From Eukaryota sp. TZLM1-RC (taxonomy: Eukaryota > Protista > Metamonada: BaSk clade): 64,000 nucleotides of DNA. Below the pieces are notes generated by a model. The model was not told where the DNA came from and did no database searches. It was given only the letters and a program-made list of their open reading frames with translations. How positions within the stretch are numbered: the first letter of the stretch is position 1; every line of letters begins with the position of its first letter. Below, one piece after another: positions 1 to 62,634 of this stretch. The translations under genes and the position numbers were made by a program. Location: contig JAUPSS010000006.1 of NCBI GenBank assembly GCA_040285825.1, positions 1 through 64,000 on the forward strand, read 5' to 3'.

Positions 1-3000
1 AATTGTTTTATTAGTACAACATTCAATTGTATACTTTTTGATTTTTTTACTTTTTACAATTTAATGTTTAAAAATTAATACACTCAATTAATTCAAATAT
101 ATACAAAATCATTTGAAAATGTAATCATGAGTTTGTACTGATCAAGTAACACATAGCCAACATTACTACACACAATTTCACACAAAGTTTGATCACAAGT
201 TGATCACATCTAGTACATAAAGACTACATGCAACTCATCTAATCATACCAATGACCATTCAACCAATCATACCAATGACTACTCAAATGACCATAGCACG
301 GACTTTAACACCACAATTGTTATATTAATTGTCCCAAAATGGACTTTAAAGATTTGACCAATGATTGTAATAAACAACCATTGGTCAATATACGAAAACT
401 AGGAACTTCATATGAGCCTCAGTAAATCGTATCAAAAACGATACTCTTACACTTACAGCAATTGTTTTTATTAGTTTACAACATTCAATTGTATACTTTT
501 TGATTTTACTTTTTACAATTTAATGTTTTAAAAATTAATACACTCAATTAATTCAAATATATACAAAAATCATTTGAAAATGTAATCATGAGTTTGTACT
601 GATCAAGTAACACATAGCCAACATTACTAACACACAATTTCACACAAAGTTTGATCACAAGTTGATCACATCTAGTACATAAAGACTACATGCAACTCAT
701 CTAATCATACCAATGACCATTCAACCAATCATACCAATGACTAATCAAATGACCATAGCACGGACTTTAACACCACAATTGTTATATTAATTGTCCCAAA
801 ATGGACTTTAAAGATTTGACCAATGATTGTAATAAACAACCATTGGTCAATATACGAAAACTAGGAACTTCATATGAGCCTCAGTAAATCGTATCAAAAA
901 CGATACTCTTACACTTACAGCAATTGTTTTATTAGTTTACAACATTCAATTGTATACTTTTGATTTTTACTTTTTTACAATTTAATGTTTAAAAAAATTA
1001 ATACACTCAATTAATTCAAATATATACAAAATCATTTGAAAATGTAATCATGAGTTTGTACTGATCAAGTAACACATAGCCAACATTACTAACACACAAT
1101 TTCACACAAAGTTTGATCACAAGTTGATCACATCTAGTACATAAAGACTACATGCAACTCATCTAATCATACCAATGACCATTCAACCAATCATACCAAT
1201 GACTAATCAAATGACCATAGCACGGACTTTAACACCACAATTGTTATATTAATTGTCCCAAAATGGACTTTAAAGATTTGACCAATGATTGTAATAAACA
1301 ACCATTGGTCAATATACGAAAACTAGGAACTTCATATGAGCCTCAGTAAATCGTATCAAAAAAACGATACTCTTACACTTACAGCAATTGTTTTATTAGT
1401 TTACAACATTCAATTGTATACTTTTGATTTTTTACTTTTTTTACAATTTAATGTTTAAAAATTAATACACTCAATTAATTCAAATATATACAAAATCATT
1501 TGAAAATGTAATCATGAGTTTGTACTGATCAAGTAACACATAGCCAACATTACTAACACACAATTTCACACAAAGTTTGATCACAAGTTGATCACATCTA
1601 GTACATAAAGACTACATGCAACTCATCTAATCATACCAATGACCATTCAACCAATCATACCAATGACTAATCAAATGACCATAGCACGGACTTTAACACC
1701 ACAATTGTTATATTAATTGTCCCAAAATGGACTTTAAAGATTTGACCAATGATTGTAATAAACAACCATTGGTCAATATACGAAACTAGGAACTTCATAT
1801 GAGCCTCAGTAAATCGTATCAAAAAAACGATACTCTTACACTTACAGCAATTGTTTTATTAGTTTACAACATTCAATTGTATACTTTTGATTTTTTACTT
1901 TTTTACAATTTAATGTTTAAAAATTAATACACTCAATTAATTCAAATATATACAAAATCATTTGAAAATGTAATCATGAGTTTGTACTGATCAAGTAACA
2001 CATAGCCAACATTACTAACACACAATTTCACACAAAGTTTGATCACAAGTTGATCACATCTAGTACATAAAGACTACATGCAACTCATCTAATCATACCA
2101 ATGACCATTCAACCAATCATACCAATGACTAATCAAATGACCATAGCACGGACTTTAACACCACAATTGTTATATTAATTGTCCCAAAATGGACTTTAAA
2201 GATTTGACCAATGATTGTAATAAACAACCATTGGTCAATATACGAAACTAGGAACTTCATATGAGCCTCAGTAAATCGTATCAAAAACGATACTCTTACA
2301 CTTACAGCAATTGTTTTATTAGTTTACAACATTCAATTGTATACTTTTTGATTTTTTACTTTTTTTACAATTTAATGTTTAAAATTAATACACTCAATTA
2401 ATTCAAATATATACAAAATCATTTGAAAATGTAATCATGAGTTTGTACTGATCAAGTAACACATAGCCAACATTACTAACACACAATTTCACACAAAGTT
2501 TGATCACAAGTTGATCACATCTAGTACATAAAGACTACATGCAACTCATCTAATCATACCAATGACCATTCAACCAATCATACCAATGACTAATCAAATG
2601 ACCATAGCACGGACTTTAACACCACAATTGTTATATTAATTGTCCCAAAATGGACTTTAAAGATTTGACCAATGATTGTAATAAACAACCATTGGTCAAT
2701 ATACGAAACTAGGAACTTCATATGAGCCTCAGTAAATCGTATCAAAAACGATACTCTTACACTTACAGCAATTGTTTTTATTAGTTTACAACATTCAATT
2801 GTATACTTTTTGATTTTTTACTTTTTACAATTTAATGTTTAAAATTAATACACTCAATTAATTCAAATATATACAAAATCATTTGAAAATGTAATCATGA
2901 GTTTGTACTGATCAAGTAACACATAGCCAACATTACTAACACACAATTTCACACAAAGTTTGATCACAAGTTGATCACATCTAGTACATAAAGACTACAT

Positions 3001-6000
3001 GCAACTCATCTAATCATACCAATGACCATTCAACCAATCATACCAATGACTAATCAAATGACCATAGCACGGACTTTAACACCACAATTGTTATATTAAT
3101 TGTCCCAAAATGGACTTTAAAGATTTGACCAATGATTGTAATAAACAACCATTGGTCAATATACGAAACTAGGAACTTCATATGAGCCTCAGTAAATCGT
3201 ATCAAAAACGATACTCTTACACTTACAGCAATTGTTTTATTAGTTTACAACATTCAATTGTATACTTTTGATTTTTTACTTTTTTACAATTTAATGTTTA
3301 AAAATTAATACACTCAATTAATTCAAATATATACAAAATCATTTGAAAATGTAATCATGAGTTTGTACTGATCAAGTAACACATAGCCAACATTACTAAC
3401 ACACAATTTCACACAAAGTTTGATCACAAGTTGATCACATCTAGTACATAAAGACTACATGCAACTCATCTAATCATACCAATGACCATTCAACCAATCA
3501 TACCAATGACTAATCAAATGACCATAGCACGGACTTTAACACCACAATTGTTATATTAATTGTCCCAAAATGGACTTTAAAGATTTGACCAATGATTGTA
3601 ATAAACAACCATTGGTCAATATACGAAACTAGGAACTTCATATGAGCCTCAGTAAATCGTATCAAAAACGATACTCTTACACTTACAGCAATTGTTTTAT
3701 TAGTTTACAACATTCAATTGTATACTTTTTGATTTTTACTTTTTTACAATTTAATGTTTAAAAATTAATACACTCAATTAATTCAAATATATACAAAAAT
3801 CATTTGAAAATGTAATCATGAGTTTGTACTGATCAAGTAACACATAGCCAACATTACTAACACACAATTTCACACAAAGTTTGATCACAAGTTGATCACA
3901 TCTAGTACATAAAGACTACATGCAACTCATCTAATCATACCAATGACCATTCAACCAATCATACCAATGACTAATCAAATGACCATAGCACGGACTTTAA
4001 CACCACAATTGTTATATTAATTGTCCCAAAATGGACTTTAAAGATTTGACCAATGATTGTAATAAACAACCATTGGTCAATATACGAAACTAGGAACTTC
4101 ATATGAGCCTCAGTAAATCGTATCAAAAACGATACTCTTACACTTACAGCAATTGTTTTATTAGTTTACAACATTCAATTGTATACTTTTGATTTTTACT
4201 TTTTACAATTTAATGTTTAAAAATTAATACACTCAATTAATTCAAATATATACAAAATCATTTGAAAATGTAATCATGAGTTTGTACTGATCAAGTAACA
4301 CATAGCCAACATTACTAACACACAATTTCACACAAAGTTTGATCACAAGTTGATCACATCTAGTACATAAAGACTACATGCAACTCATCTAATCATACCA
4401 ATGACCATTCAACCAATCATACCAATGACTAATCAAATGACCATAGCACGGACTTTAACACCACAATTGTTATATTAATTGTCCCAAAATGGACTTTAAA
4501 GATTTGACCAATGATTGTAATAAACAACCATTGGTCAATATACGAAACTAGGAACTTCATATGAGCCTCAGTAAATCGTATCAAAAACGATACTCTTACA
4601 CTTACAGCAATTGTTTTATTAGTTTACAACATTCAATTGTATACTTTTGATTTTTTACTTTTTTACAATTTAATGTTTAAAAATTAATACACTCAATTAA
4701 TTCAAATATATACAAAATCATTTGAAAATGTAATCATGAGTTTGTACTGATCAAGTAACACATAGCCAACATTACTAACACACAATTTCACACAAAGTTT
4801 GATCACAAGTTGATCACATCTAGTACATAAAGACTACATGCAACTCATCTAATCATACCAATGACCATTCAACCAATCATACCAATGACTAATCAAATGA
4901 CCATAGCACGGACTTTAACACCACAATTGTTATATTAATTGTCCCAAAATGGACTTTAAAGATTTGACCAATGATTGTAATAAACAACCATTGGTCAATA
5001 TACGAAACTAGGAACTTCATATGAGCCTCAGTAAATCGTATCAAAACGATACTCTTACACTTACAGCAATTGTTTTATTAGTTTACAACATTCAATTGTA
5101 TACTTTTTGATTTTTTACTTTTTTACAATTTAATGTTTAAAAATTAATACACTCAATTAATTCAAATATATACAAAATCATTTGAAAATGTAATCATGAG
5201 TTTGTACTGATCAAGTAACACATAGCCAACATTACTAACACACAATTTCACACAAAGTTTGATCACAAGTTGATCACATCTAGTACATAAAGACTACATG
5301 CAACTCATCTAATCATACCAATGACCATTCAACCAATCATACCAATGACTAATCAAATGACCATAGCACGGACTTTAACACCACAATTGTTATATTAATT
5401 GTCCCAAAATGGACTTTAAAGATTTGACCAATGATTGTAATAAACAACCATTGGTCAATATACGAAACTAGGAACTTCATATGAGCCTCAGTAAATCGTA
5501 TCAAAACGATACTCTTACACTTACAGCAATTGTTTTATTAGTTTACAACATTCAATTGTATACTTTTGATTTTTACTTTTTACAATTTAATGTTTAAAAA
5601 TTAATACACTCAATTAATTCAAATATATACAAAATCATTTGAAAATGTAATCATGAGTTTGTACTGATCAAGTAACACATAGCCAACATTACTAACACAC
5701 AATTTCACACAAAGTTTGATCACAAGTTGATCACATCTAGTACATAAAGACTACATGCAACTCATCTAATCATACCAATGACCATTCAACCAATCATACC
5801 AATGACTAATCAAATGACCATAGCACGGACTTTAACACCACAATTGTTATATTAATTGTCCCAAAATGGACTTTAAAGATTTGACCAATGATTGTAATAA
5901 ACAACCATTGGTCAATATACGAAACTAGGAACTTCATATGAGCCTCAGTAAATCGTATCAAAAACGATACTCTTACACTTACAGCAATTGTTTTATTAGT

Positions 6001-9000
6001 TTACAACATTCAATTGTATACTTTTTGATTTTTTACTTTTTTACAATTTAATGTTTAAAAATTAATACACTCAATTAATTCAAATATATACAAAATCATT
6101 TGAAAATGTAATCATGAGTTTGTACTGATCAAGTAACACATAGCCAACATTACTAACACACAATTTCACACAAAGTTTGATCACAAGTTGATCACATCTA
6201 GTACATAAAGACTACATGCAACTCATCTAATCATACCAATGACCATTCAACCAATCATACCAATGACTAATCAAATGACCATAGCACGGACTTTAACACC
6301 ACAATTGTTATATTAATTGTCCCAAAATGGACTTTAAAGATTTGACCAATGATTGTAATAAACAACCATTGGTCAATATACGAAACTAGGAACTTCATAT
6401 GAGCCTCAGTAAATCGTATCAAAAACGATACTCTTACACTTACAGCAATTGTTTTATTAGTTTACAACATTCAATTGTATACTTTTGATTTTTTACTTTT
6501 TTACAATTTAATGTTTAAAAATTAATACACTCAATTAATTCAAATATATACAAAATCATTTGAAAATGTAATCATGAGTTTGTACTGATCAAGTAACACA
6601 TAGCCAACATTACTAACACACAATTTCACACAAAGTTTGATCACAAGTTGATCACATCTAGTACATAAAGACTACATGCAACTCATCTAATCATACCAAT
6701 GACCATTCAACCAATCATACCAATGACTAATCAAATGACCATAGCACGGACTTTAACACCACAATTGTTATATTAATTGTCCCAAAATGGACTTTAAAGA
6801 TTTGACCAATGATTGTAATAAACAACCATTGGTCAATATACGAAACTAGGAACTTCATATGAGCCTCAGTAAATCGTATCAAAAACGATACTCTTACACT
6901 TACAGCAATTGTTTTATTAGTTTACAACATTCAATTGTATACTTTTTGATTTTTTACTTTGTTTACAATTTAATGTTTAAAAATTAATACACTCAATTAA
7001 TTCAAATATATACAAAATCATTTGAAAATGTAATCATGAGTTTGTACTGATCAAGTAACACATAGCCAACATTACTAACACACAATTTCACACAAAGTTT
7101 GATCACAAGTTGATCACATCTAGTACATAAAGACTACATGCAACTCATCTAATCATACCAATGACCATTCAACCAATCATACCAATGACTAATCAAATGA
7201 CCATAGCACGGACTTTAACACCACAATTGTTATATTAATTGTCCCAAAATGGACTTTAAAGATTTGACCAATGATTGTAATAAACAACCATTGGTCAATA
7301 TACGAAACTAGGAACTTCATATGAGCCTCAGTAAATCGTATCAAAACGATACTCTTACACTTACAGCAATTGTTTTATTAGTTTACAACATTCAATTGTA
7401 TACTTTTTGATTTTTTACTTTTTTACAATTTAATGTTTAAAAATTAATACACTCAATTAATTCAAATATATACAAAATCATTTGAAAATGTAATCATGAG
7501 TTTGTACTGATCAAGTAACACATAGCCAACATTACTAACACACAATTTCACACAAAGTTTGATCACAAGTTGATCACATCTAGTACATAAAGACTACATG
7601 CAACTCATCTAATCATACCAATGACCATTCAACCAATCATACCAATGACTAATCAAATGACCATAGCACGGACTTTAACACCACAATTGTTATATTAATT
7701 GTCCCAAAATGGACTTTAAAGATTTGACCAATGATTGTAATAAACAACCATTGGTCAATATACGAAACTAGGAACTTCATATGAGCCTCAGTAAATCGTA
7801 TCAAAAACGATACTCTTACACTTACAGCAATTGTTTTATTAGTTTACAACATTCAATTGTATACTTTTTGATTTTTACTTTTTTACAATTTAATGTTTAA
7901 AATTAATACACTCAATTAATTCAAATATATACAAAATCATTTGAAAATGTAATCATGAGTTTGTACTGATCAAGTAACACATAGCCAACATTACTAACAC
8001 ACAATTTCACACAAAGTTTGATCACAAGTTGATCACATCTAGTACATAAGGACTACATGCAACTCATCTAATCATACCAATGACCATTCAACCAATCATA
8101 CCAATGACTAATCAAAAAAAAGGACTACCATAGCACGGACTTTAACACCACAATTGTTATATTAATTGTCCCAAAATGGACTTTAAAGATTTGACCAATG
8201 ATTGTAATAAACAACCATTGGTCAATATACGAAACTAGGAACTTCATATGAGCCTCAGTAAATCGTATCAAAACGATACTCTTACACTTACAGCAATTGT
8301 TTTTATTAGTTTACAACATTCAATTGTATACTTTTGATTTTTACTTTTTACAATTTAATGTTTAAAAATTAATACACTCAATTAATTCAAATATATACAA
8401 AATCATTTGAAAATGTAATCATGAGTTTGTACTGATCAAGTAACACATAGCCAACATTACTAACACACAATTTCACACAAAGTTTGATCACAAGTTGATC
8501 ACATCTAGTACATAAAGACTACATGCAACTCATCTAATCATACCAATGACCATTCAACCAATCATACCAATGACTAATCAAATGACCATAGCACGGACTT
8601 TAACACCACAATTGTTATATTAATTGTCCCAAAATGGACTTTAAAGATTTGACCAATGATTGTAATAAACAACCATTGGTCAATATACGAAACTAGGAAC
8701 TTCATATGAGCCTCAGTAAATCGTATCAAAAACGATACTCTTACACTTACAGCAATTGTTTTATTAGTTTACAACATTCAATTGTATACTTTTTGATTTT
8801 TTATTTTTTTTAATGTTTAAAAATTAATACACTCAATTAATTCAAATATATACAAAATCATTTGAAAATGTAATCATGAGTTTGTACTGATCAAGTAACA
8901 CATAGCCAACATTACTAACACACAATTTCACACAAAGTTTGATCACAAGTTGATCACATCTAGTACATAAAGACTACATGCAACTCATCTAATCATACCA

Positions 9001-11924
9001 ATGACCATTCAACCAATCATACCAATGACTAATCAAATGACCATAGCACGGACTTTAACACCACAATTGTTATATTAATTGTCCCAAAATGGACTTTAAA
9101 GATTTGACCAATGATTGTAATAAACAACCATTGGTCAATATACGAAACTAGGAACTTCATATGAGCCTCAGTAAATCGTATCAAAAACGATACTCTTACA
9201 CTTACAGCAATTGTTTTATTAGTTTACAACATTCAATTGTATACTTTTTGATTTTTTATTTTGTTTACAATTTAATGTTTAAAAATTAATACACTCAATT
9301 AATTCAAATATATACAAAATCATTTGAAAATGTAATCATGAGTTTGTACTGATCAAGTAACACATAGCCAACATTACTAACACACAATTTCACACAAAGT
9401 TTGATCACAAGTTGATCACATCTAGTACATAAAGACTACATGCAACTCATCTAATCATACCAATGACCATTCAACCAATCATACCAATGACTAATCAAAT
9501 GACCATAGCACGGACTTTAACACCACAATTGTTATATTAATTGTCCCAAAATGGACTTTAAAGATTTGACCAATGATTGTAATAAACAACCATTGGTCAA
9601 TATACGAAACTAGGAACTTCATATGAGCCTCAGTAAATCGTATCAAAACGATACTCTTACACTTACAGCAATTGTTTTATTAGTTTACAACATTCAATTG
9701 TATACTTTTGATTTTTACTTTTTTACAATTTAATGTTTAAAATTAATACACTCAATTAATTCAAATATATACAAAATCATTTGAAAATGTAATCATGAGT
9801 TTGTACTGATCAAGTAACACATAGCCAACATTACTAACACACAATTTCACACAAAGTTTGATCACAAGTTGATCACATCTAGTACATAAAGACTACATGC
9901 AACTCATCTAATCATACCAATGACCATTCAACCAATCATACCAATGACTAATCAAATGACCATAGCACGGACTTTAACACCACAATTGTTATATTAATTG
10001 TCCCAAAATGGACTTTAAAGATTTGACCAATGATTGTAATAAACAACCATTGGTCAATATACGAAACTAGGAACTTCATATGAGCCTCAGTAAATCGTAT
10101 CAAAAACGATACTCTTACACTTACAGCAATTGTTTTATTAGTTTACAACATTCAATTGTATACTTTTTGATTTTTTATTTTTTTTAATGTTTAAAAATTA
10201 ATACACTCAATTAATTCAAATATATACAAAATCATTTGAAAATGTAATCATGAGTTTGTACTGATCAAGTAACACATAGCCAACATTACTAACACACAAT
10301 TTCACACAAAGTTTGATCACAAGTTGATCACATCTAGTACATAAAGACTACATGCAACTCATCTAATCATACCAATGACCATTCAACCAATCATACCAAT
10401 GACTAATCAAATGACCATAGCACGGACTTTAACACCACAATTGTTATATTAATTGTCCCAAAATGGACTTTAAAGATTTGACCAATGATTGTAATAAACA
10501 ACCATTGGTCAATATACGAAACTAGGAACTTCATATGAGCCTCAGTAAATCGTATCAAAAACGATACTCTTACACTTACAGCAATTGTTTTATTAGTTTA
10601 CAACATTCAATTGTATACTTTTGATTTTTTACTTTTTACAATTTAATGTTTAAAAATTAATACACTCAATTAATTCAAATATATACAAAATCATTTGAAA
10701 ATGTAATCATGAGTTTGTACTGATCAAGTAACACATAGCCAACATTACTAACACACAATTTCACACAAAGTTTGATCACAAGTTGATCACATCTAGTACA
10801 TAAAGACTACATGCAACTCATCTAATCATACCAATGACCATTCAACCAATCATACCAATGACTAATCAAATGACCATAGCACGGACTTTAACACCACAAT
10901 TGTTATATTAATTGTCCCAAAATGGACTTTAAAGATTTGACCAATGATTGTAATAAACAACCATTGGTCAATATACGAAACTAGGAACTTCATATGAGCC
11001 TCAGTAAATCGTATCAAAAACGATACTCTTACACTTACAGCAATTGTTTTATTAGTTTACAACATTCAATTGTATACTTTTTGATTTTTACTATTTTTAC
11101 AATTTAATGTTTAAAAATTAATACACTCAATTAATTCAAATATATACAAAATCATTTGAAAATGTAATCATGAGTTTGTACTGATCAAGTAACACATAGC
11201 CAACATTACTAACACACAATTTCACACAAAGTTTGATCACAAGTTGATCACATCTAGTACATAAAGACTACATGCAACTCATCTAATCATACCAATGACC
11301 ATTCAACCAATCATACCAATGACTACTCAAATGACCATAGCACGGACTTTAACACCACAATTGTTATATTAATTGTCCCAAAATGGACTTTAAAGATTTG
11401 ACCAATGATTGTAATAAACAACCATTGGTCAATATACGAAACTAGGAACTTCATATGAGCCTCAGTAAATCGTATCAAAAACGATACTCTTACACTTACA
11501 GCAATTGTTTTATTAGTTTACAACATTCAATTGTATACTTTTGATTTTTTACTATTTTTACAATTTAATGTTTAAAAATTAATACACTCAATTAATTCAA
11601 ATATATACAAAATCATTTGAAAATGTAATCATGAGTTTGTACTGATCAAGTAACACATAGCCAACATTACTAACACACAATTTCACACAAAGTTTGATCA
11701 CAAGTTGATCACATCTAGTACATAAAGACTACATGCAACTCATCTAATCATACCAATGACCATTCAACCAATCATACCAATGACTAATCAAATGACCATA
11801 GCACGGACTTTAACACCACAATTGTTATATTAATTGTCCCAAAATGGACTTTAAAGATTTGACCAATGATTGTAATAAACAACCATTGGTCAATATACGA
11901 AACTAGGAACTTCATATGAGCCTC

Positions 11925-11936
11925 AGTAAATCGTAT
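11925..11936 (+). repeat. Left target-site duplication (12 bp)
   Basis: AGTAAATCGTAT, identical to 13262-13273. Confidence 0.9.
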
Positions 11937-13261
11937 TAATTTTCAAGCAAATTGGTTTGAAATTGAATTTGACAAAAACCGAAGTGTTTTCAGTTGAAGA
12001 TGATTTCATGTGTTTGGGATCTCCAATAGGTTCTACTGAGTTTGAATCCTCTTTTATAATTCAAAAAGTTCAAAATGAATTGATTCCCAGTTTATTTTTA
12101 TTAAAATCATTACCACTACAAAATCAATTTTTAATATTTAGACATTGTATTAATTCAATTTTGATGTACTGGGCCCGAACAGTTCCCTATGAATCCACCA
12201 GAATGGGTTTTCATCTTTGGGTTTCAGAATTTGTTGCTTATTTCAACTTAATAGGATTGGAAGAATCAAATAATTTTGATTTAATTTATTTGCCTCATTC
12301 TTTGGGTGGATTAGGATTTCTCCATCTGGGCCAAGTTGCACATATTTGCTATTCAGTTTCTGTATACTTGGCTGTACGTGATCTTGATTTAACGAATTTA
12401 ATTCCAAGTGATCAGTATAGGGTTTTACTATCAGCTTTATCACCTTCTTTTGCTGGTTTTGACTCAATCTGGGACAAACGAATTAAAATTTGCCAACGTC
12501 AAATCACTCATTTATTTTATAAGGAGAAATTGAGTCTTTTGAAGGAAAAACTATCAGAATGCGAACGACTACAATTTATTTCAAATTGTGACAGTCAATC
12601 TTCTTGTTTTTTGAAAGTCTTGCCTATTTCTCAAAATTTCACGTTCTCAGATGATTGCTTTAAATACCTAATAAATCTGAGATTGCTTCAAGGAGAACAA
12701 TTTGTGATATGTCCTTTGTGTGGTTATGGAGACCTAGGCTTAGATCACTCTTTTCAATGTAGAAAAGTCTCGAGAATGGTTACACAAAGACATGACGAAG
12801 TAAATAATTTTATTAACGAATTAAATAATTTTGAATCTGAAAAGGAATTTAAATTTGGTTTAAATAAGCAGTTACGTGTTGATGGCTTTCAAACGTCAAC
12901 CAAAATTGCTTTTGATGTTACCATAGTTGGAGGTTATGGTAATAATTGGAGTGATGCTTTTTCGAAAGCTTATTCTGATAAAATTGCAAAGTATTCAATT
13001 TTAAAAGAATTAAATTTAATTAACCAAATTGTTCCTCTCGTTTTTAGTGTTCATGGGGGTTTTTACACTAAAACAAAAGTACTGTTTGACCAATTTGGAT
13101 GGAATGAGTTAGCAAATGAAATTAGTTGTATCATTTTGAAGAATAGCTTTAAATGCCACAGTGCATTTAATTATATACTTCAAAAGAAAAGAGAAGATCG
13201 TCAATGTTGGTAGGTAGTTGTTTTTTAGTATTCAAGTAGTTTCTTCTTAATTTTCAATAAA
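11937..13261 (+). mobile_element. 5'-truncated RLE-class (CRE/R2-like) non-LTR retrotransposon inserted in one repeat unit (family E)
   Basis: Flanked by the direct repeat AGTAAATCGTAT (11925-11936 and 13262-13273), which is single-copy in normal units. Starts mid-RT and has a 48-nt 3' UTR ending in AATAAA. Confidence 0.93.
11957..13213 (+). CDS. C-terminal part of retrotransposon ORF (end of RT, thumb, CCHC zinc knuckle, RLE nuclease); no true start codon
   Basis: GLKLNLTKT (late RT motif), LPHSLGGLG, CPLCG...HSFQC, and RHD...RVDG...FDVTI...KIAKY (PD-(D/E)xK-type RLE). The frame is uninterrupted. Confidence 0.9.
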   Translation: MKLNLTKTEVFSVEDDFMCLGSPIGSTEFESSFIIQKVQNELIPSLFLLKSLPLQNQFLIFRHCINSILMYWARTVPYESTRMGFHLWVSEFVAYFNLIGLEESNNFDLIYLPHSLGGLGFLHLGQVAHICYSVSVYLAVRDLDLTNLIPSDQYRVLLSALSPSFAGFDSIWDKRIKICQRQITHLFYKEKLSLLKEKLSECERLQFISNCDSQSSCFLKVLPISQNFTFSDDCFKYLINLRLLQGEQFVICPLCGYGDLGLDHSFQCRKVSRMVTQRHDEVNNFINELNNFESEKEFKFGLNKQLRVDGFQTSTKIAFDVTIVGGYGNNWSDAFSKAYSDKIAKYSILKELNLINQIVPLVFSVHGGFYTKTKVLFDQFGWNELANEISCIILKNSFKCHSAFNYILQKKREDRQCW

Positions 13262-13273
13262 AGTAAATCGTAT
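13262..13273 (+). repeat. Right target-site duplication (12 bp)
   Basis: AGTAAATCGTAT; the array resumes in register afterwards. Confidence 0.9.
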
Positions 13274-16200
13274 CAAAAACGATACTCTTACACTTACAGC
13301 AATTGTTTTATTAGTTTACAACATTCAATTGTATACTTTTTGATTTTTTACTATTTTTACAATTTAATGTTTAAAAATTAATAAACTCAATTAATTCAAA
13401 TATATACAAAATCAATTGAAAATGTAATCATGAGTTTGTACTTATCAAGTAACACATAGCCAACATTACTCACACACAATTTCACACAAAGTTTGATCAC
13501 AAGTTGATCACATCTAGTACATAAGGACTACATGCAACTCACCTCATCACACCAATGACCATTCAACCAATCATACCAATGACTAATCAAATGACCATAG
13601 CACGGACTTTAACACCACAATTGTTATATTAATTGTCCCAAAATGGACTTTAAAGATTTGACCAATGATTGTAATAAACAACCATTGGTCAATATACGAA
13701 ACTAGGAACTTCATATGAGCCTCAGTAAATCGTATCAAAAACGATACTCTTACACTTACAGCAATTGTTTTATTAGTTTACAACATTCAATTGTATACTT
13801 TTTGATTTTTTACTATTTTTACAATTTAATGTTTAAAAATTAATACACTCAATTAATTCAAATATATACAAAATCAATTGAAAATGTAATCATGAGTTTG
13901 TACTGATCAAGTAACACATAGCCAACATTACTCACACACAATTTCACACAAAGTTTGATCACAAGTTGATCACATCTAGTACATAAGGACTACATGCAAC
14001 TCACCTCATCACACCAATGACCATTCAACCAATCATACCAATGACTACTCAAATGACCATAGCACGGACTTTAACACCACAATTGTTATATTAATTGTCC
14101 CAAAATGGACTTTAAAGATTTGACCAATGATTGTAATAAACAACCATTGGTCAATATACGAAACTAGGAACTTCATATGAGCCTCAGTAAATCGTATCAA
14201 AAACGATACTCTTACACTTACAGCAATGGTTTTATTAGTTTGCAACATTCAATTGTATACTTTTTGATTTTTTACTTTTTTTACAATTTAATGTTTAAAA
14301 ATTAATACACTCAATTAATTCAAATATATACAAAATCATTTGAAAATGTAATCATGAGTTTGTACTGATCAAGTAACACATAGCCAACATTACTAACACA
14401 CAATTTCACACAAAGTTTGATCACAAGTTGATCACATCTAGTACATAAAGACTACATGCAACTCATCTAATCATACCAATGACCATTCAACCAATCATAC
14501 CAATGACTAATGACCATAGCACGGACTTTAACACCACAATTGTTATATTAATTGTCCCAAAATGGACTTTAAAGATTTGACCAATGATTGTAATAAACAA
14601 CCATTGGTCAATATACGAAACTAGGAACTTCATATGAGCCTCAGTAAATCGTATCAAAAACGATACTCTTACACTTACAGCAATTGTTTTATTAGTTTAC
14701 AACATTCAATTGTCTACTTTTTGATTTTTTACTTTTTTTACAATTTAATGTTTAAAAATTAATGAACTCAATTAATTCAAATATATACAAAATCAATTGA
14801 AAATGTAATCATGAGTTTGTTCTGATCAAGTAACACATAGCCAACATTACTCACACACAATTTCACACAAAGTTTGATCACAAGTTGATCACATCTAGTG
14901 CATAAGGACTACATGCAACTCACCTAATCATACCAATGACCATTCAACCAATCATACCAATGACTACTCAAATGACCATAGCACGGACTTTAACACCACA
15001 ATTGTTATAATAATTGTCCCAAAATGGACTTTAAAGATTTGACCAATGATTGTAATAAACAACCATTGGTCAATATACGAAACTAGGAACTTCATATGAG
15101 CCTCAGTAAATCGTATCAAAAACGATACTCTTACACTTACAGCAATTGTTTTATTAGTTTACAACATTCAATTGTATACTTTTTGATTTTTTACTATTTT
15201 TACAATTTAATGTTTAAAAATTAATAAACTCAATTAATTCAAATATATACAAAATCAATTGAAAATGTAATCATGAGTTTGTACTGATCAAGTAACACAT
15301 AGCCAACATTACTCACACACAATTTCACACAAAGTTTGATCACAAGTTGATCACATCTAGTACATAAGGACTACATGCAACTCACCTCATCACACCAATG
15401 ACCATTCAACCAATCATACCAATGACTAATCAAATGACCATAGCACGGACTTTAACACCACAATTGTTATATTAATTGTCCCAAAATGGACTTTAAAGAT
15501 TTGACCAATGATTGTAATAAACAACCATTGGTCAATATACGAAACTAGGAACTTCATATGAGCCTCAGTAAATCGTATCAAAAACGATACTCTTACACTT
15601 ACAGCAATTGTTTTATTAGTTTACAACATTCAATTGTATACTTTTTGATTTTTTACTATTTTTACAATTTAATGTTTAAAAATTAATAAACTCAATTAAT
15701 TCAAATATATACAAAATCAATTGAAAATGTAATCATGAGTTTGTACTTATCAAGTAACACATAGCCAACATTACTCACACACAATTTCACACAAAGTTTG
15801 ATCACAAGTTGATCACATCTAGTACATAAGGACTACATGCAACTCACCTCATCACACCAATGACCATTCAACCAATCATACCAATGACTAATCAAATGAC
15901 CATAGCACGGACTTTAACACCACAATTGTTATATTAATTGTCCCAAAATGGACTTTAAAGATTTGACCAATGATTGTAATAAACAACCATTGGTCAATAT
16001 ACGAAACTAGGAACTTCATATGAGCCTCAGTAAATCGTATCAAAAACGATACTCTTACACTTACAGCAATTGTTTTATTAGTTTACAACATTCAATTGTA
16101 TACTTTTTGATTTTTTACTATTTTTACAATTTAATGTTTAAAAATTAATAAACTCAATTAATTCAAATATATACAAAATCAATTGAAAATGTAATCATGA

Positions 16201-19200
16201 GTTTGTACTGATCAAGTAACACATAGCCAACATTACTCACACACAATTTCACACAAAGTTTGATCACAAGTTGATCACATCTAGTACATAAAGACTACAT
16301 GCAACTCATCTAATCACACCAATGACCATTCAACCAATCATACCAATGACTAATCAAATGACCATAGCACGGACTTTAACACCACAATTGTTATATTAAT
16401 TGTCCCAAAATGGACTTTAAAGATTTGACCAATGATTGTAATAAACAACCATTGGTCAATATACGAAACTAGGAACTTCATATGAGCCTCAGTAAATCGT
16501 ATCAAAAACGATACTCTTACACTTACAGCAATGGTTATATTAGTTTGCAACATTCAATTGTATACTTTTTGATTTTTTACTTTTTTTACAATTTAATGTT
16601 TAAAAATTAATACACTCAATTAATTCAAATATATACAAAATCATTTGAAAATGTAATCATGAGTTTGTACTGATCAAGTAACACATAGCCAACATTACTC
16701 ACACACAATTTCACACAAAGTTTGATCACAAGTTGATCACATCTAGTACATAAGGACTACATGCAACTCACCTCATCACACCAATGACCATTCAACCAAT
16801 CATACCAATGACTAATCAAATGACCATAGCACGGACTTTAACACCACAATTGTTATATTAATTGTCCCAAAATGGACTTTAAAGATTTGACCAATGATTG
16901 TAATAAACAACCATTGGTCAATATACGAAACTAGGAACTTCATATGAGCCTCAGTAAATCGTATCAAAAACGATACTCTTACACTTACAGCAATTGTTTT
17001 ATTAGTTTACAACATTCAATTGTATACTTTTGATTTTTACTATTTTTACAATTTAATGTTTAAAAATTAATACACTCAATTAATTCAAATATATACAAAA
17101 TCATTTGAAAATGTAATCATGAGTTTGTACTGATCAAGTAACACATAGCCAACATTACTAACACACAATTTCACACAAAGTTTGATCACAAGTTGATCAC
17201 ATCTAGTACATAAAGACTACATGCAACTCATCTAATCATACCAATGACCATTCAACCAATCATACCAATGACTAATCAAATGACCATAGCACGGACTTTA
17301 ACACCACAATTGTTATATTAATTGTCCCAAAATGGACTTTAAAGATTTGACCAATGATTGTAATAAACAACCATTGGTCAATATACGAAACTAGGAACTT
17401 CATATGAGCCTCAGTAAATCGTATCAAAAACGATACTCTTACACTTACAGCAATTGTTTTATTAGTTTACAACATTCAATTGTATACTTTTGATTTTTAC
17501 TTTTTTACAATTTAATGTTTAAAAATTAATACACTCAATTAATTCAAATATATACAAAATCATTTGAAAATGTAATCATGAGTTTGTACTGATCAAGTAA
17601 CACATAGCCAACATTACTAACACACAATTTCACACAAAGTTTGATCACAAGTTGATCACATCTAGTACATAAAGACTACATGCAACTCATCTAATCATAC
17701 CAATGACCATTCAACCAATCATACCAATGACTAATCAAATGACCATAGCACGGACTTTAACACCACAATTGTTATATTAATTGTCCCAAAATGGACTTTA
17801 AAGATTTGACCAATGATTGTAATAAACAACCATTGGTCAATATACGAAACTAGGAACTTCATATGAGCCTCAGTAAATCGTATCAAAAACGATACTCTTA
17901 CACTTACAGCAATTGTTTTATTAGTTTACAACATTCAATTGTATACTTTTGATTTTTTACTTTTTTTACAATTTAATGTTTAAAAATTAATACACTCAAT
18001 TAATTCAAATATATACAAAATCAGTTGAAAATGTAATCATGAGTTTGTACTGATCAAGTAACACATAGCCAACATTACTAACACACAATTTCACACAAAG
18101 TTTGATCACAAGTTGATCACATCTAGTACATAAAGACTACATGCAACTCATCTAATCATACCAATGACCATTCAACCAATCATACCAATGACTAATCAAA
18201 TGACCATAGCACGGACTTTAACACCACAATTGTTATATTAATTGTCCCAAAATGGACTTTAAAGATTTGACCAATGATTGTAATAAACAACCATTGGTCA
18301 ATATACGAAACTAGGAACTTCATATGAGCCTCAGTAAATCGTATCAAAAACGATACTCTTACACTTACAGCAATTGTTTTATTAGTTTACAACATTCAAT
18401 TGTATACTTTTTGATTTTTTACTTTTTTTACAATTTAATGTTTAAAAATTAATACACTCAATTAATTCAAATATATACAAAATCAGTTGAAAATGTAATC
18501 ATGAGTTTGTACTGATCAAGTAACACATAGCCAACATTACTCACACACAATTTCACACAAAGTTTGATCACAAGTTGATCACATCTAGTACATAAGGACT
18601 ACATCATGCAACTCACGTAATCACCAATGACCATTCAACCAATCATACCAATGACTACTCAAATGACCATAGCACGGACTTTAACACCACAATTGTTATA
18701 TTAATTGTCCCAAAATGGACTTTAAAGATTTGACCAATGATTGTAATAAACAACCATTGGTCAATATACGTAACCATTGGTCAATATTGAAAATGTAATC
18801 ATGAGTTTGTACTGATCAAGTAACACATAGCCAACATTACTAACACACAATTTCACACAAAGTTTGATCACAAGTTGATCACATCTAGTACATAAAGACT
18901 ACATGCAACTCACCAAATCAAACCAATGACCATTCAACCAATCAAACCAATGACTACTCAAATGACCATAGCACGGACTTTAACACCACAATTGTTATAT
19001 TAATTGTCCCAAAATGGACTTTAAAGATTTGACCAATGATTGTAATAAACAACCATTGGTCAATATACGAAACTAGGAACTTCATATGAGCCTCAGTAAA
19101 TCGTATCAAAACGATACTCTTACACTTACAGCAATTGTTTTATTAGTTTACAACATTCAATTGTATACTTTTGATTTTTACTTTTTTACAATTTAATGTT

Positions 19201-22200
19201 TAAAAATTAATACACTCAATTAATTCAAATATATACAAAATCATTTGAAAATGTAATCATGAGTTTGTACTGATCAAGTAACACATAGCCAACATTACTA
19301 ACACACAATTTCACACAAAGTTTGATCACAAGTTGATCACATCTAGTACATAAAGACTACATGCAACTCATCTAATCATACCAATGACCATTCAACCAAT
19401 CATACCAATGACTAATCAAATGACCATAGCACGGACTTTAACACCACAATTGTTATATTAATTGTCCCAAAATGGACTTTAAAGATTTGACCAATGATTG
19501 TAATAAACAACCATTGGTCAATATACGAAACTAGGAACTTCATATGAGCCTCAGTAAATCGTATCAAAAACGATACTCTTACACTTACAGCAATTGTTTT
19601 ATTAGTTTACAACATTCAATTGTATACTTTTTGATTTTTTACTTTTTACAATTTAATGTTTAAAAATTAATACACTCAATTAATTCAAATATATACAAAA
19701 TCATTTGAAAATGTAATCATGAGTTTGTACTGATCAAGTAACACATAGCCAACATTACTAACACACAATTTCACACAAAGTTTGATCACAAGTTGATCAC
19801 ATCTAGTACATAAAGACTACATGCAACTCATCTAATCATACCAATGACCATTCAACCAATCATACCAAAGACTAATCAAATGACCATAGCACGGACTTTA
19901 ACACCACAATTGTTATATTAATTGTCCCAAAATGGACTTTAAAGATTTGACCAATGATTGTAATAAACAACCATTGGTCAATATACGAAACTAGGAACTT
20001 CATATGAGCCTCAGTAAATCGTATCAAAAACGATACTCTTACACTTACAGCAATTGTTTTATTAGTTTACAACATTCAATTGTATACTTTTTGATTTTTT
20101 ACTTTTTTTTACAATTTAATGTTTAAAAATTAATACACTCAATTAATTCAAATATATACAAAATCATTTGAAAATGTAATCATGAGTATGTATTGACCAA
20201 CTAACACATAGCCAACATTACTCACACTCATTTTCACACAAAGTTTGATCACAAGTTGATCACATCTAGTACATAAAGACTACATGCAACTCATCTAATC
20301 ATACCAATGACCATTCAACCAATCATACCAATGACTAATCAAATGACCATAGCACGGACTTTAACACCACAATTGTTATATTAATTGTCCCAAAATGGAC
20401 TTTAAAGATTTGACCAATGATTGTAATAAACAACCATTGGTCAATATACGAAACTAGGAACTTCATATGAGCCTCAGTAAATCGTATCAAAAACGATACT
20501 CTTACACTTACAGCAATTGTTTTATTAGTTTACAACATTCAATTGTATACTTTTTTGATTTTTTACTTTTTTTACAATTTAATGTTTAAAAATTAATACA
20601 CTCAATTAATTCAAATATATACAAAATCAGTTGAAAATGTAATCATGAGTTTGTACTGATCAAGTAACACATAGGCAACATTACTCACACACAATTTCAC
20701 ACAAAGTTTGATCACAAGTTGATCACATCTAGTACATAAAGACTACATGCAACTCATCTAATCATACCAATGACCATTCAACCAATCATACCAATGACTA
20801 ATCAAATGACCATAGCACGGACTTTAACACCACAATTGTTATATTAATTGTCCCAAAATGGACTTTAAAGATTTGACCAATGATTGTAATAAACAACCAT
20901 TGGTCAATATACGAAACTAGGAACTTCATATGAGCCTCAGTAAATCGTATCAAAAACGACACTCTTACACTTACAGCAATTGTTTTATTAGTTTACAACA
21001 TTCAATTGTATACTTTTTGATTTTTTACTTTTTTTACAATTTAATGTTTAAAAATTAATACACTCAATTAATTCAAATATATACAAAATCATTTGAAAAT
21101 GTAATCATGAGTTTGTACTGATCAAGTAACACATAGCCAACATTACTCACACACAATTTCACACAAAGTTTGATCACAAGTTGATCACATCTAGTACATA
21201 AAGACTACATGCAACTCACCAAATCACACCAATGACCATTCAACCAATCAAACCAATGACTACTCAAATGACCATAGCAAGGACTTTAACACCACAATTG
21301 TTATATTAATTGTCCCAAAATGGACTTTAAAGATTTGACCAATGATTGTAATAAACAACCATTGGTCAATATACGAAACTAGGAACTTCATATGAGCCTC
21401 AGTAAATCGTATCAAAAACGATACTCTTACACTTACAGCAATTGTTTTATTAGTTTACAACATTCAATTGTATACTTTTTGATTTTTTACTTTTTTTACA
21501 ATTTAATGTTTAAAAATTAATACACTCAATTAATTCAAATACATACAAAATCAATTGAAAATGTAATCATGAGTACTGATCAAGTAACACATAGCCAACA
21601 TTACTCACACACAATTTCACACAAAGTTTGATCACAAGTTGATCACATCTAGTACATAAGGACTACATCATGCAACTCACGTAATCACCAATGACCATTC
21701 AACCAATCATACCAATGACTACTCAAATGACCATAGCACGGACTTTAACACCACAATTGTTATATTAATTGTCCCAAAATGGACCTTAAAGATTTGACCA
21801 ATGATTGTAATAAACAACCATTGGTCAATTTACGAAACTAGGAACTTCATATGAGCCTCAGTAAATCGTATCAAAAACGATACTCTTACACTTACAGCAA
21901 TTGTTTTATTAGTTTACAACATTCAATTGTATACTTTTTGATTTTTTACTATTTTTACAATTTAATGTTTAAAAATTAAAACAATTTTGAATTTTGCTTC
22001 ATAAATTTTGCTTTTTTTATATATTTTTCATTGGTTGATCGACTATGATTCTGTGAATTTTGCTTTATTTAAACCTGAAGAGTAAAACAAAAAGGTTGTT
22101 ACGGGTATAATTTAAATTTTCAACCTGCGTCTGAAACCGATTCTTCTAGGAATTACGATTTCATACCATGTGTTTGTTTTCCAACTACCAAATAATGAAT

Positions 22201-22511: not shown

Positions 22512-22640
22512 AACTTTTATTACACTTACACACTTAACATAATTAACTCATAAATAATGAGACGAAAATAATTTAACCAAGATTTCTTCCACAAAATCTT
22601 GATCTGCTTGCTCTCTAGCTAATGCTTCTCTAATGAGATT
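22512..22640 (-). mobile_element. 3' stub of a family-B-like CRE retrotransposon
   Basis: Encodes ...EALAREQADQDFVEEILV-like terminus plus a 3' UTR similar to 34020-34145. Confidence 0.75.
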
Positions 22641-29720: not shown

Positions 29721-31325
29721 ATGGACATCCCTGAACATCTTTCATCAGCTGCCAGGAGGAAGCTCAATGAGATGTTTGTAGTTTGGGTTTGCCTACCTAG
29801 TACACAGAAACTTCTTACAGACATTGTCTCTGCAGTCAAACAAGGAAAGCCTCTTCCCGCTAGACTTCCAGCATCCCCACTCACTCGATCTCCCAAAACC
29901 CCAGCCTCTCCTCCCCGATCTCCTCTTTCCCCCACATATGCCAAGGGCGACTCCACAGCTCTATCTCCTCTAGGATCTCCCACTCGTAAAGCTGAACCCC
30001 TCACTTCCTTCTCCACTTCACCGATCTCCCTGGGGCCTACACCAGAACCCTCTCCAGAAGCCGAAGAACCCCCTATTGACACGTCAAACATTGTCATTCC
30101 TCTTCCTGGTGTTTCTATTTATACAAACACTGAATCCGAACTTTCTCTTTTGCGATCTGTGTTTCATTCCTCTACAATCTCTTCCACGTCACCATCATGG
30201 CTGGAAGTCGTGCGATTTCTTGATTTACCTTCCTTTTCTGCCCAATATTTAGCCTATAGAATTCATAATCCAACTACAGAAGCTCCTTCATTGCTTTCTG
30301 ATTTCAATTACCAACCTGAATCCTACACAATCAGTTGGAACTCACTTGAGTCGTTCTACACGTCACGCCTTGCTGGCAGAGAGTCATCAGATAGACTTTT
30401 CAATATACTAAGTCCGCAAGTTGATGATGGTACAATCAACATGACTCAACTACTACCATTACTTCAGCATTATGTACATAACCATTCTGGCCTTGCTTTT
30501 CTCAAGGACACACCCGAATTCCAAGCTTCCTATGCTGAAACCATCGCACTCAGAGTATTGTACATTGCCGACACATTAGCATTAGGTCGGGTGAACAGAT
30601 TGGCTTTTAGGAGGAGTAAGTTTTTTAATAGTTGTATGGAGGTAGACGCTATGACTGATGTGAATCTTGAATTGAATTATTTTTCTTATGAACACTTTTA
30701 CGTTTTGTACTGCAAATTTTGGGAATTGGATACGGATCAGAACAAAATTTTGGACCGTGAAGACTTGCTAAGATATGGCAACTATGCTCTTGGTACTAGG
30801 GCAATTGATAGAATTTTGGCCGGAGCTCCTAGAAAACTAACATCTACTGTACCTAATACAATGAACTTTCAAGATTTTGTTGCCTTTTGTATTTCAGAAG
30901 AAGATAAAACAACCGAAACCTCACTTATTTATTGGTTGAGGGTCTGTGATTTAGATGGTGATGGTATTCTTTCGCTTTTTGAAATGGAGTTTTTCTATGA
31001 AGAACAAATTCAAAGGATTATAAATACTGGGCAGGAAAGCGTAACATATGAAGATTTGATTTGTCAGATCTTTGACATTATGAAACCAAAAAATTATTCA
31101 CAATTGACTTTGGCAGATTTAAAAAGGGCATCGTGCAAAGGTGCCATTTTCAATTACTTATTGAATATTCAGAAATTCTTTCTGTATGAGCAACGAGATC
31201 CTTTTGAAGTAAATGATCCAGAAGCATTAGAATCAACTGATTGGGCCAGGTTTGCCAAGTTAGAATATGATAAGTTGGCCAGTGACACGGAAGGGGTTTC
31301 TGATTGGGGAAATGTGTCTTTTTGA
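29721..31325 (+). CDS. PPP2R3: Protein phosphatase 2A regulatory subunit B'' (PR72/PPP2R3 family, EF-hands)
   Basis: Signature FSYEHFYVLYCKFWELDTD, HSGLAFLKDTPEFQ, and EF-hand DLDGDGILS. Confidence 0.93.
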   Translation: MDIPEHLSSAARRKLNEMFVVWVCLPSTQKLLTDIVSAVKQGKPLPARLPASPLTRSPKTPASPPRSPLSPTYAKGDSTALSPLGSPTRKAEPLTSFSTSPISLGPTPEPSPEAEEPPIDTSNIVIPLPGVSIYTNTESELSLLRSVFHSSTISSTSPSWLEVVRFLDLPSFSAQYLAYRIHNPTTEAPSLLSDFNYQPESYTISWNSLESFYTSRLAGRESSDRLFNILSPQVDDGTINMTQLLPLLQHYVHNHSGLAFLKDTPEFQASYAETIALRVLYIADTLALGRVNRLAFRRSKFFNSCMEVDAMTDVNLELNYFSYEHFYVLYCKFWELDTDQNKILDREDLLRYGNYALGTRAIDRILAGAPRKLTSTVPNTMNFQDFVAFCISEEDKTTETSLIYWLRVCDLDGDGILSLFEMEFFYEEQIQRIINTGQESVTYEDLICQIFDIMKPKNYSQLTLADLKRASCKGAIFNYLLNIQKFFLYEQRDPFEVNDPEALESTDWARFAKLEYDKLASDTEGVSDWGNVSF

Positions 31326-41770: not shown

Positions 41771-41819
41771 GTAATCAACTAATTGGTGTTTGAATACACT
41801 TTTGGTAAAGATGATTTAA

Positions 41820-41935
41820 GAGAACCTTTAGCTAGACAGCAAGCGGATCAAGATTTTGTAGAGGAAATCTTGGTTCAATGATATTCGTCTCATTAGATAT
41901 GAATTAATTTTATTAAGTGTGCATGTTCAATAAAT
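41820..41935 (+). mobile_element. 3' stub of a family-B-like element
   Basis: Encodes LARQQADQDFVEEILV followed by a UTR ending in AATAAA. Confidence 0.75.
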
Positions 41936-44927: not shown

Positions 44928-44999
44928 TTCGCATACCGGGAATCGAACCCGGGTCTAGTATGTGAAAGACACTAATGCTAGCCACTACACCATATGCGA
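44928..44999 (-). tRNA. trnE-UUC: tRNA-Glu (TTC)
   Basis: Acceptor stem TCGCATA/TATGCGA, anticodon arm AGTGT-CTTTCAC-ATACT, T arm CCGGG-TTCGATT-CCCGG, followed by TTTT. Confidence 0.96.
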
Positions 45000-47486: not shown

Positions 47487-47906
47487 TTATGATTCTGGAA
47501 ATTCACCATATGGTGAAAATGAATCAGGTATTGCGCCGATCCCTTGAAAATAATCAAATCACATCTGTTTTACCAATCAAAACCATTGAGATTTCTTTTA
47601 ATTTTCTTCCTTAACAACTACGCTAAAATATGGCTTCAGGATTCAATAACACCCTATGTGTGTATACGTTTGCGGTTTCGAAACGGATTTCTCATGTTGA
47701 CTTCCAATTAATCTGTTCCAATTCTGTTTCTCACATCTGTTATGCGTCTCCAAAGAGAAAAAATTGGCAATCAATGATTTGACCAATAGATGATAACCAC
47801 TTGGTAAATTGCCTCATATCAAACAAATCAGATATAATATGAATTATGTAATTATAAATATATGGATATTTAATATCTTACAGTGTGGACCTTAGTTATT
47901 GAATAC

Positions 47907-51078: not shown

Positions 51079-51234
51079 TGATGATCTGTGGGGGTTAGAC
51101 ATTGAGTATACCTTAAATGTAATTTATTACAGGGAAATAAGGATTTCCCTAAACTTAAGCGCATAGGCGCAATAAATACAAATACTATTAATAAACTATA
51201 AATAAACTATTATAAATATTATCCAAGGCTAACA
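51079..51234 (-). repeat. 3' LTR
   Basis: Identical to 58340-58495. Confidence 0.97.
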
Positions 51235-53837: not shown

Positions 53838-53955
53838 GATGCTTTTGCCAGGGATGCTTAAGGCAGTCTTCTCCCAGTCCTTTTCTGCAATTTTTAGTTG
53901 CCAAAAGGCTTTGGGAGGTCAAGGGTACCGATGAAATTGGCTTCTGAAAGGAAGA

Positions 53956-62434: not shown

Positions 62435-62577
62435 TAAACTTGACTTTTTTCTTTAGGTTCTATTTGAATTATTTCGTCTTTTTTAATATTGTTTTATTCG
62501 ATTAATAAATTTGTTTTTTCAATTTCTTCATATTTTAACAATTAAACCATCAATTACTTACCAAATATTGTAATCGT

Positions 62578-62634
62578 ATTTATTGAATTTGCACACTTGA
62601 TTAAATTAAATCATAACTAATGGGACGACTATCA
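62578..62634 (-). mobile_element. Isolated family B 3' UTR
   Basis: 57 bp identical to 34022-34078. Confidence 0.8.

Follow-up and report, generated by a model that had tools for sequence, protein, structure and literature searches.

Site-specific non-LTR retrotransposons with a restriction-like endonuclease (RLE) are the model for target-primed reverse transcription and the basis of R2-derived gene-insertion tools. In Giardia, a metamonad related to the host considered here, the RLE-type elements GilM and GilT (Genie) occupy subtelomeric arrays adjoining the rDNA. The rDNA targets described for RLE elements lie in the middle of the 28S gene (R2), near its start (R9) and in the 18S gene (R8) (PMC4838377), and, as of PMC5035012, R2 was known from animals only. 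Elements of the CRE/SLACS type share the pattern C-X1-3-C-X7-8-H-X3-4-C-X9-10-RHD...E...R/KPD...D/E (PMC12857005), while an RNase H domain upstream of the reverse transcriptase (RT) was called unique to the oomycete Utopia elements by Kojima and Jurka (PMC4640811). The genome paper for the protists studied here does not mention retrotransposons.

The locus described here lies in a window of 64,000 nucleotides (contig JAUPSS010000006.1, positions 1 to 64,000 of the forward strand; all coordinates without a locus name are those of the window) from the metamonad Eukaryota sp. TZLM1-RC (GCA_040285825.1). Our main reading, to which we give a probability of roughly 85%, is that an insert in a tandem array of this window is a dead-on-arrival copy of an autonomous RLE non-LTR element with a site preference for the 28S tail.

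A truncated element copy splits one unit of a 460-bp array

TRF identifies an array with a period of 460–462 bp that covers positions 1–11936 (period 460, 25.9 copies, 98% matches) and 13262–21983, the window starting inside the array, and each unit combines, as the Rfam LSU alignment of a unit shows, some 70 nt from the 3' end of the 28S rRNA (minus strand) with about 390 nt of spacer. One unit is broken by a 1,325-bp insert at 11937–13261, which is flanked on the plus strand by two copies of the target-site duplication AGTAAATCGTAT (11925–11936 and 13262–13273, the left copy also supported by Logan contigs), and the period of the array is exactly regained once 1,337 bp are taken out. The uninterrupted unit is itself present in Logan contigs of the source sample, where 11924 is joined to 13262 with 12 letters fitting on each side; the duplication is given as 10–12 bp because its final AT could equally be the element's. 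This arrangement of a split unit, a 1,325-bp insert and a 12-bp duplication had been described in the initial annotation, and it is borne out by TRF, by the sequence and by the Logan contigs. No second copy is found in the window, nor any relative by tblastn at E<0.01. The contigs of a second organism from the same study (organism B) contain the unit and the empty site at 98–100% identity and at a depth of 300–1,200, depth being a poor gauge of copy number; the element interior was not found in these contigs.

The insert (11937–13261, plus strand) corresponds to positions 2642–3965 of the longest copy of the element (locus L001:9900–13864) at 99.1% identity (blastn), i.e., to the 3' third of an element of at least 3,965 bp. 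The comparison places its 5' break just past the YLDD motif, in agreement with the truncation within the RT that had been proposed. An open frame of 424 codons plus stop (11939–13213, plus strand; TAG at 13211–13213) encodes the end of the RT palm, the thumb, a linker, a CCHC knuckle and the RLE, as read from the translation, an AF2 model and Foldseek, and is followed by a 48-nt 3' UTR (13214–13261) which ends in ...TTTTCAATAAA without poly(A). The intact knuckle and RLE frame and the 48-nt UTR had been noted from the outset, and the CPLC knuckle, the RVDG motif and the short C-terminus listed with them are all present.

An exhaustive HMMER search yields only 88 matches at E<1e-3 among 1.84 billion representatives, and 22 relatives from this search were aligned with the C-terminal 424 aa of the window copy (alignment A1). 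The consensus of these sequences (23 including that of the window) reads CPxC...H...C, RHD, RxD, DxTxV and KxxKY. The knuckle of the window copy follows C-X2-C-X8-H-X3-C (residues 258–274; 12710–12760, plus strand), with C258, H270 and C274 nearly invariant in the alignment. The core of the endonuclease (12788–13063, plus strand) contains RHD (residues 284–286), RVD (313–315), FDVT (325–328) and KIAKY (348–352), as delimited by the consensus, by the secondary structure of the model over residues 275–370 and by the CRE/SLACS motif pattern (PMC12857005).

Pfam gives no match on the 424 aa of the window copy, nor does phmmer against the PDB; the classification is drawn from motifs and fold together with the long copy. 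Modelled with AF2, the 424 aa reach a pLDDT of 91.3, and the seven best Foldseek matches of this model in the PDB are R2 retrotransposon proteins (E 1e-8 to 5e-6, TM 0.57–0.62 over about 450 columns, probability 1.00 for the best R2 match), followed by PD-(D/E)XK cap-snatching nucleases.

The longest copy carries an RNase H domain upstream of the reverse transcriptase

A database search finds annotated fragments of the element family in the same assembly (GCA_040285825.1), grouped in a 29-member cluster and in a second cluster that includes the 1,048-aa protein P0017. The longest copy, in L001, measures at least 3.97 kb and has an ORF of about 1,250 aa with the domain order RNase H, two C2H2 fingers, RT, CCHC knuckle and RLE; a 518-bp unrelated dispersed repeat lies upstream of L001:9897, and the length is thus a lower bound. 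The compact family that had been expected is not borne out by this size and by an ORF that starts with an RNase H and two C2H2 fingers. P0017 displays the corresponding order, with a Ser-rich N-terminus, an RNase_H domain (residues 140–280, E 8.7e-14, the customary acidic and His residues being read by eye), two C2H2 fingers and RVT_1 (residues 672–876, E 1.5e-18), and its nearest solved proteins by sequence are those of R2 (E 5e-8).

Pfam finds neither an APE nor a Myb domain in P0017. The AF2 model of the N-terminal half (RNase H, fingers and pre-RT region) has a pLDDT of 53, too low for a Myb fold to be recognised, and Rfam finds no ribozyme family in L001 at gathering score. The search for a fuller copy, with its N-terminal domains and a 5' ribozyme, has thus produced at least 3.97 kb with two C2H2 fingers, but a broken frame and no Myb domain or ribozyme by Pfam and Rfam. 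Compared with the window copy, L001 lacks a single nucleotide at two places in T runs, and its frame is thereby interrupted; these deletions could be real mutations or long-read errors. A word-based protein search with the RT region returns four distant matches and no more, and a feature search of the ESM Atlas returns generic RVT clusters only. Motifs, fold and sequence together establish the element as an RLE-type non-LTR retrotransposon.

The array unit contains the tail of the 28S rRNA

The target, which had not been recognised in the initial annotation, can be identified from an Rfam LSU alignment, the gene order of one locus and a short-read contig. Positions 3327–3401 of the Rfam eukaryotic LSU model (the last ~75) can be aligned with the unit in minus orientation, the posterior being high across the terminal helix (E 0.012 for 1.4 kb and 2.8e-4 for 200 nt; aligned unit sequence ...AUUGCUGUAAGUGUAAGAGUAUCGUUUUUGAUACGAUUUACUGAGGCUCAUAUG...UUUCGU). 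For the unit starting at 14186, model position 3401 falls at window position 14158, 28 nt to the left of the target 12-mer. With coordinates transferred by unit register, the left half of the 28S-like segment split by the insert (11897–11936, minus strand) comprises the last 28 nt of the 28S and the 12-nt duplicated target, and the right half (13262–13303, minus strand) extends to the point past which array unit and true 28S diverge, as seen from a contig of run X1 and the Rfam consensus. This contig tracks the unit to 13303 and then continues (reverse complement) with ACCTTGGCAGACGACCAAGATACGGAACTC, which fits the Rfam consensus ..GuAGACGAC..; on the window plus strand, the true 28S reads ...CAGCAAT then GAGTTCCGTATC, and the array reads ...CAGCAATTGTTTTATT. 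Because the contig leaves the unit after 13303, the true 28S gene and the unit share positions 1–42, an identity that rests on one Logan contig and the Rfam alignment. Both junctions lie inside the 28S terminal helix, at 28 nt (bottom strand) and 40 nt (top strand) from the 28S 3' end.

A consistent picture is provided by L005, which shows in order the SSU gene (minus strand, 1–933), the array with four copies of the family (3387–13644) and the LSU gene (minus strand, from 18382). Every on-site copy (defined below) is antisense to the rRNA, the SSU and LSU genes of L005 being on the strand opposite to the elements. Judged by sequence and gene order, the target is the 3'-terminal helix of the 28S rRNA, a copy of which is present in each spacer unit.

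An intact 28S 3' end was not found in L001–L008 with Rfam or with sarcin-ricin and R2-site patterns; the sole LSU gene of these loci (L005/L008) is interrupted at GAGACAGGTT by an element of another family, and L007 has just a fragment of the 28S. With Rfam, neither the window nor L001–L008 show a match to U2, and the flanks of the element are the 28S-like unit. Weak Rfam matches on the plus strand (snoMe28S-Am2634 and microRNAs) were dismissed, the snoRNA-like match being far under threshold and overlapping the 28S-like stretch on the opposite strand, of which it is read as a by-product.

Insertions recur at one nucleotide of the unit

Copies of the element were mapped at ≥80% identity in 11 distinct fetched loci (L008 overlaps L005) and in the window. 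The junction is the same in 17 of the 22 copies, at one nucleotide and on one strand of the unit (...CAATAAA|AGTAAATCGTATCAAAA), i.e., a site CTC|AGTAAATCG that becomes ...CAATAAA|AGTAAATCG on insertion; this ratio describes a sample, since the loci were reached through annotated ORF fragments, namely the listed members of the 29-member cluster (all but 14). These on-site copies are found in the window (1), L001 (1), L002 (8), L003 (1), L005 (4) and L010 (2), the latter five loci belonging to contigs 4, 7, 11 and 13 of the assembly, four besides that of the window. Their 5' ends lie at element positions 2554, 2623, 2642, 2706, 2901, 2904, 3152 and 3412, to which one long copy is added. Some length classes recur, the 3412 class six times at a spacing of about 1,025 bp in L002 and the 2706, 2904 and 3152 classes twice each, and evenly spaced copies of the same class are composite units amplified by recombination of the array. 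When each length class is scored once, the on-site copies reduce to nine or more independent events, all of them at a single nucleotide and on a single strand of the 460-bp unit, and the chance that eight further events would coincide with a first is about (1/920)^8.

The remaining 5 of the 22 copies are inserted in gene-rich, single-copy DNA (L004, 89% identical; L006; L009, rearranged; L011; L012), and the enzyme must therefore tolerate other sites. Duplications are seen in L006 (AGCATCTGAACA, 12 bp), L011 (AGTAAACACTCTCC, 14 bp) and L012 (AGCAAAGTG(TAA), 9–12 bp), and all three begin C|AG(T/C)A, with the preceding C as in the canonical CTC|AGTAAATCGTAT. The copy in L004 has no recognisable duplication, its junction showing AGTAAATC followed by unrelated sequence; these eight bases may be the short motif again, or else donor flank that came along in the transcript. 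From these sites, the core of the cut site can be written as about C|AG(T/C)A(A), with a constant stagger of 12–14 nt.

Tabulating the flanks of the 3' end, as had been suggested, therefore gives a mixed answer for a family specific for the repeat: 17 of the 22 copies in the 11 loci and the window, which stand for nine or more independent insertions at a single nucleotide and strand, argue for it, but 5 of the 22 sit at unrelated single-copy places. Overall, the distribution is that of an RLE element with a new target, for which its preference is strong but not absolute.

Three other explanations of this pattern can be weighed. According to the first, which we regard as improbable, the element would have a short nick-site preference only (about C|AGYAAA), and its apparent attachment to the array would reflect at least 1,000 identical copies of that motif together with selection removing insertions elsewhere. 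The off-site insertions indeed have C|AG(T/C)A and little else in common, one third of the independent events are off-site, and the k-mer depth of the unit in Logan is in the thousands versus about 10 for the element. However, 125 kb of non-array DNA contain CAGYAAA at a density of about 600 per Mb; with the summed lengths of the contigs encountered (at least 22 Mb) taken as the genome, this amounts to well over 10,000 sites, and the motif alone would lead to a few percent of events in the array against the 9 of 14 independent events observed. The estimate is rough, and selection against genic insertions raises the on-site share. Moreover, no insertion is seen at the second AGTAAA, which the unit carries on its opposite strand.

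It is much less likely still that a single ancestral insertion was spread by unequal crossing-over and acquired its various lengths by later deletions. Composite units have plainly been amplified, as the repeated 3412, 2706, 2904 and 3152 classes attest, but all eight length classes retain the upstream unit exactly to the duplicated 9–12 nt (whole up to AGTAAATC(GTAT) in every on-site class), some with an untemplated AA or with a microhomology of one or two bases at the 5' junction, whereas random deletions would not all begin at the junction; in addition, the classes are spread over four different contigs. Finally, a long-read assembly chimera in a repetitive region is scarcely credible, since the assembly shows the identical junction 17 times, the 3' junction of the insert lies within a short-read contig of run X2 (12842–13300) and Logan contigs of runs X1 and X2 cover the element interior, even though, among the contigs listed, none spans the whole stretch and the 5' junction of the window is absent, so that the proposed check of the junctions against reads holds for the 3' side.

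A model for integration into the 28S tail

Junctions, duplications and independent truncations, as well as the domains encoded and the derivation of the target from the 28S, are direct observations, and they fit what would be expected under the R2 paradigm with the strands reversed. By analogy with R2, the protein would recognise the DNA encoding the 28S 3'-terminal helix, possibly through its C2H2 fingers, and would first nick the rRNA-sense strand (the minus strand of the window) opposite ...CCTC|AGTAAAT...; the freed 3'-OH would then prime reverse transcription of the element RNA, bound by its 3' end, beginning at ...CAAUAAA. A second cut in the other strand, 12 nt on (...CGTAT|CAAAA), would give rise to the 12-bp duplication. 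The order of the nicks, the assignment of the fingers as the domain that reads the helix and the binding of the RNA 3' end are all borrowed from R2. Reverse transcription would frequently halt early, leaving 5'-truncated copies.

In this organism, the rDNA spacer contains long arrays in which the last ~70 nt of the 28S and the adjoining spacer are amplified as 460-bp units, and this would explain why nearly all insertions are found in array copies and not in a 28S gene. Since it runs antisense to Pol I transcription and L001 yields no Rfam ribozyme, the element would have to possess its own promoter, as opposed to the R2-like strategy of co-transcription and self-cleavage, and would thus be transcribed independently of the rRNA.

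Related families in the same genome occupy other rDNA sites

The nearest proteins (49–57% identity) belong to other families of TZLM1-RC, and TZLM3-RCL has a relative at 35%. In every family examined, the element terminates in (A/T)ATAAA, immediately adjoining its own target. One sister family is inserted at ATCTAATCATACC, in the spacer part of the 460-bp unit (L003, L002), another at AGCCGCTTCGG, in the 28S near Rfam model position 954 (L007, L008), and a 30% relative at AACCTGTCTCACGAC in the 28S (L005). The upstream RNase H is common to P0028 and P0176 (TZLM1-RC) and to the metagenomic proteins P0019 and P0186, and may represent an independent or an older acquisition. Beyond these, the profile search gives few named relatives, from the fungi Kwoniella, Aureobasidium and Fusarium and from Symbiodinium, and two more cluster look-ups give hypothetical or unnamed proteins only.

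One may speculate, tentatively and at less than even odds, that the element and its sister families form an undescribed protist RLE lineage with RNase H upstream of the RT, in which close relatives (30–57% identical over the C-terminal 424 aa) were each retargeted to a different exact rDNA site (the 28S tail, two internal 28S sites and one in the spacer), and that the amplified 28S tail acts as a sink which shields the real genes and was possibly selected for that. The sister families, about 50% identical and inserted at other rDNA sites, would in any case offer a natural series on how such proteins change target, and the amplified 28S tails of the spacer suggest that a genome can bear many insertions of an element seeking rRNA genes at low cost.

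Comparison with known RLE elements

The CRE clade (CRE1/2, SLACS, CZAR and the fungal Cnl1, MoTeR and FoTeR) resembles the present element in its N-terminal C2H2 fingers and in its specificity for multicopy targets. The element reads C-X2-C-X8-H-X3-C-X9-RHD-X14/16-E-X9-RVD-X10-D, which fits the published motif pattern of the clade, with RVD in place of R/KPD and two spacers under the published ranges. In contrast, CRE elements target spliced-leader genes or telomeres as opposed to the 28S terminal helix, and the RNase H sets the present element apart. The oomycete Utopia elements (NeSL clade) can be likened to it by domain order and type of target, being RLE elements with RNase H upstream of the RT that enter a multicopy RNA gene, although theirs is the U2 snRNA gene and not a 28S-like unit.

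The nearest solved structures, both by sequence and by fold, are those of R2. Together with R8 and R9, R2 shares with the present element a single ORF, an RLE, insertion at one nucleotide of an rRNA gene, the succession of N-terminal zinc fingers, RT, CCHC knuckle and PD-(D/E)XK nuclease, an exact 3' junction that lacks poly(A), and 5' ends that are often truncated. Unlike these animal elements, the element described here is inserted 28 nt from the 28S 3' end; it further differs from R2 in being antisense to the rRNA, which precludes co-transcription, in carrying RNase H upstream of the RT and, as far as Pfam shows, no Myb domain, and in its regular 12-bp duplication. What it adds to the known systems is therefore an exactly defined target in the 3'-terminal helix of the 28S rRNA, an orientation opposite to that of R2, a stagger fixed at 12 nt, an RNase H domain that precedes the RT and a host, a metamonad protist, far outside the animals.

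Related families in the rDNA

Insertions related to the main family, an RLE non-LTR retrotransposon, were also found at other positions of the rDNA; identities refer to its C-terminal 424 aa. One sister family (~53%) lies in two loci fetched from the assembly (L003:8687-12775; L002:~13400-14270 and ~1840-2080), likewise carries an RNase H upstream of the RT, and has a 3' end, ...TTCAATAAA, abutting (G)ATCTAATCATACCAATGACC, which belongs to the spacer part of the 460-bp unit and is distinct from the main family's site.

Dispersed repeat and off-site copy

A dispersed repeat of ~518 bp with constant ends and 97% identity between copies (L001:9379-9896, window 34022-34539 and L004:20084-20602; weaker copies at window 41817-41935, 22516-22640 and 62577-62634) directly adjoins the 5' end of the long main-family copy in L001, and the true 5' junction of that copy is therefore hidden. 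The copy in L004, 89% identical, is the oldest off-site copy of the main family. In its 3' flank (L004:11087-11110), the 8 nt with which the canonical target begins, AGTAAATC, come first and unrelated DNA follows, and no duplication is present upstream; AGTAAATC could be donor flank brought along in a read-through transcript.

The window also contains, on the minus strand, an LTR-type retrotransposon pol in two neighbouring ORFs (51219-56892; aspartyl protease, RT, RNase H and integrase domains), which has no relation to the main-family insertion. A tRNA gene (44928-44999, minus strand, 59.7 bits) and genes for a B-box zinc-finger protein (47883-49055, plus strand) and an EF-hand protein (29721-31325, plus strand) all lie within the non-array half of the window.

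Target array in a second organism

Contigs of organism B from the same study (run X4) were compared with window 11700-13500. They match both the 460-bp unit and the unoccupied target site, with 98-100% identity and depths of 300-1,200, and none covers the element interior. The target array seems to be present there without the main family, an absence that contigs cannot prove.

Insertions within 28S

Sister families of ~57% identity (L007:3595-4260 and 4490-4910; L008:11657-12160) end in ...C(A/T)ATAAA against AGCCGCTTCGG, which in L007 runs on into 28S sequence near position 954 of the Rfam LSU model. A more distant family (30%; pattern hits at L005:13896, 17056 and 18382, minus strand) ends in ...AAATAAA against AACCTGTCTCACGAC and interrupts the sole LSU gene among the fetched loci at GAGACAGGTT, a break past which the single Rfam LSU match in L005 (18357-20672) extends. 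The orientation in L007 is antisense to the rRNA, as in the main family.
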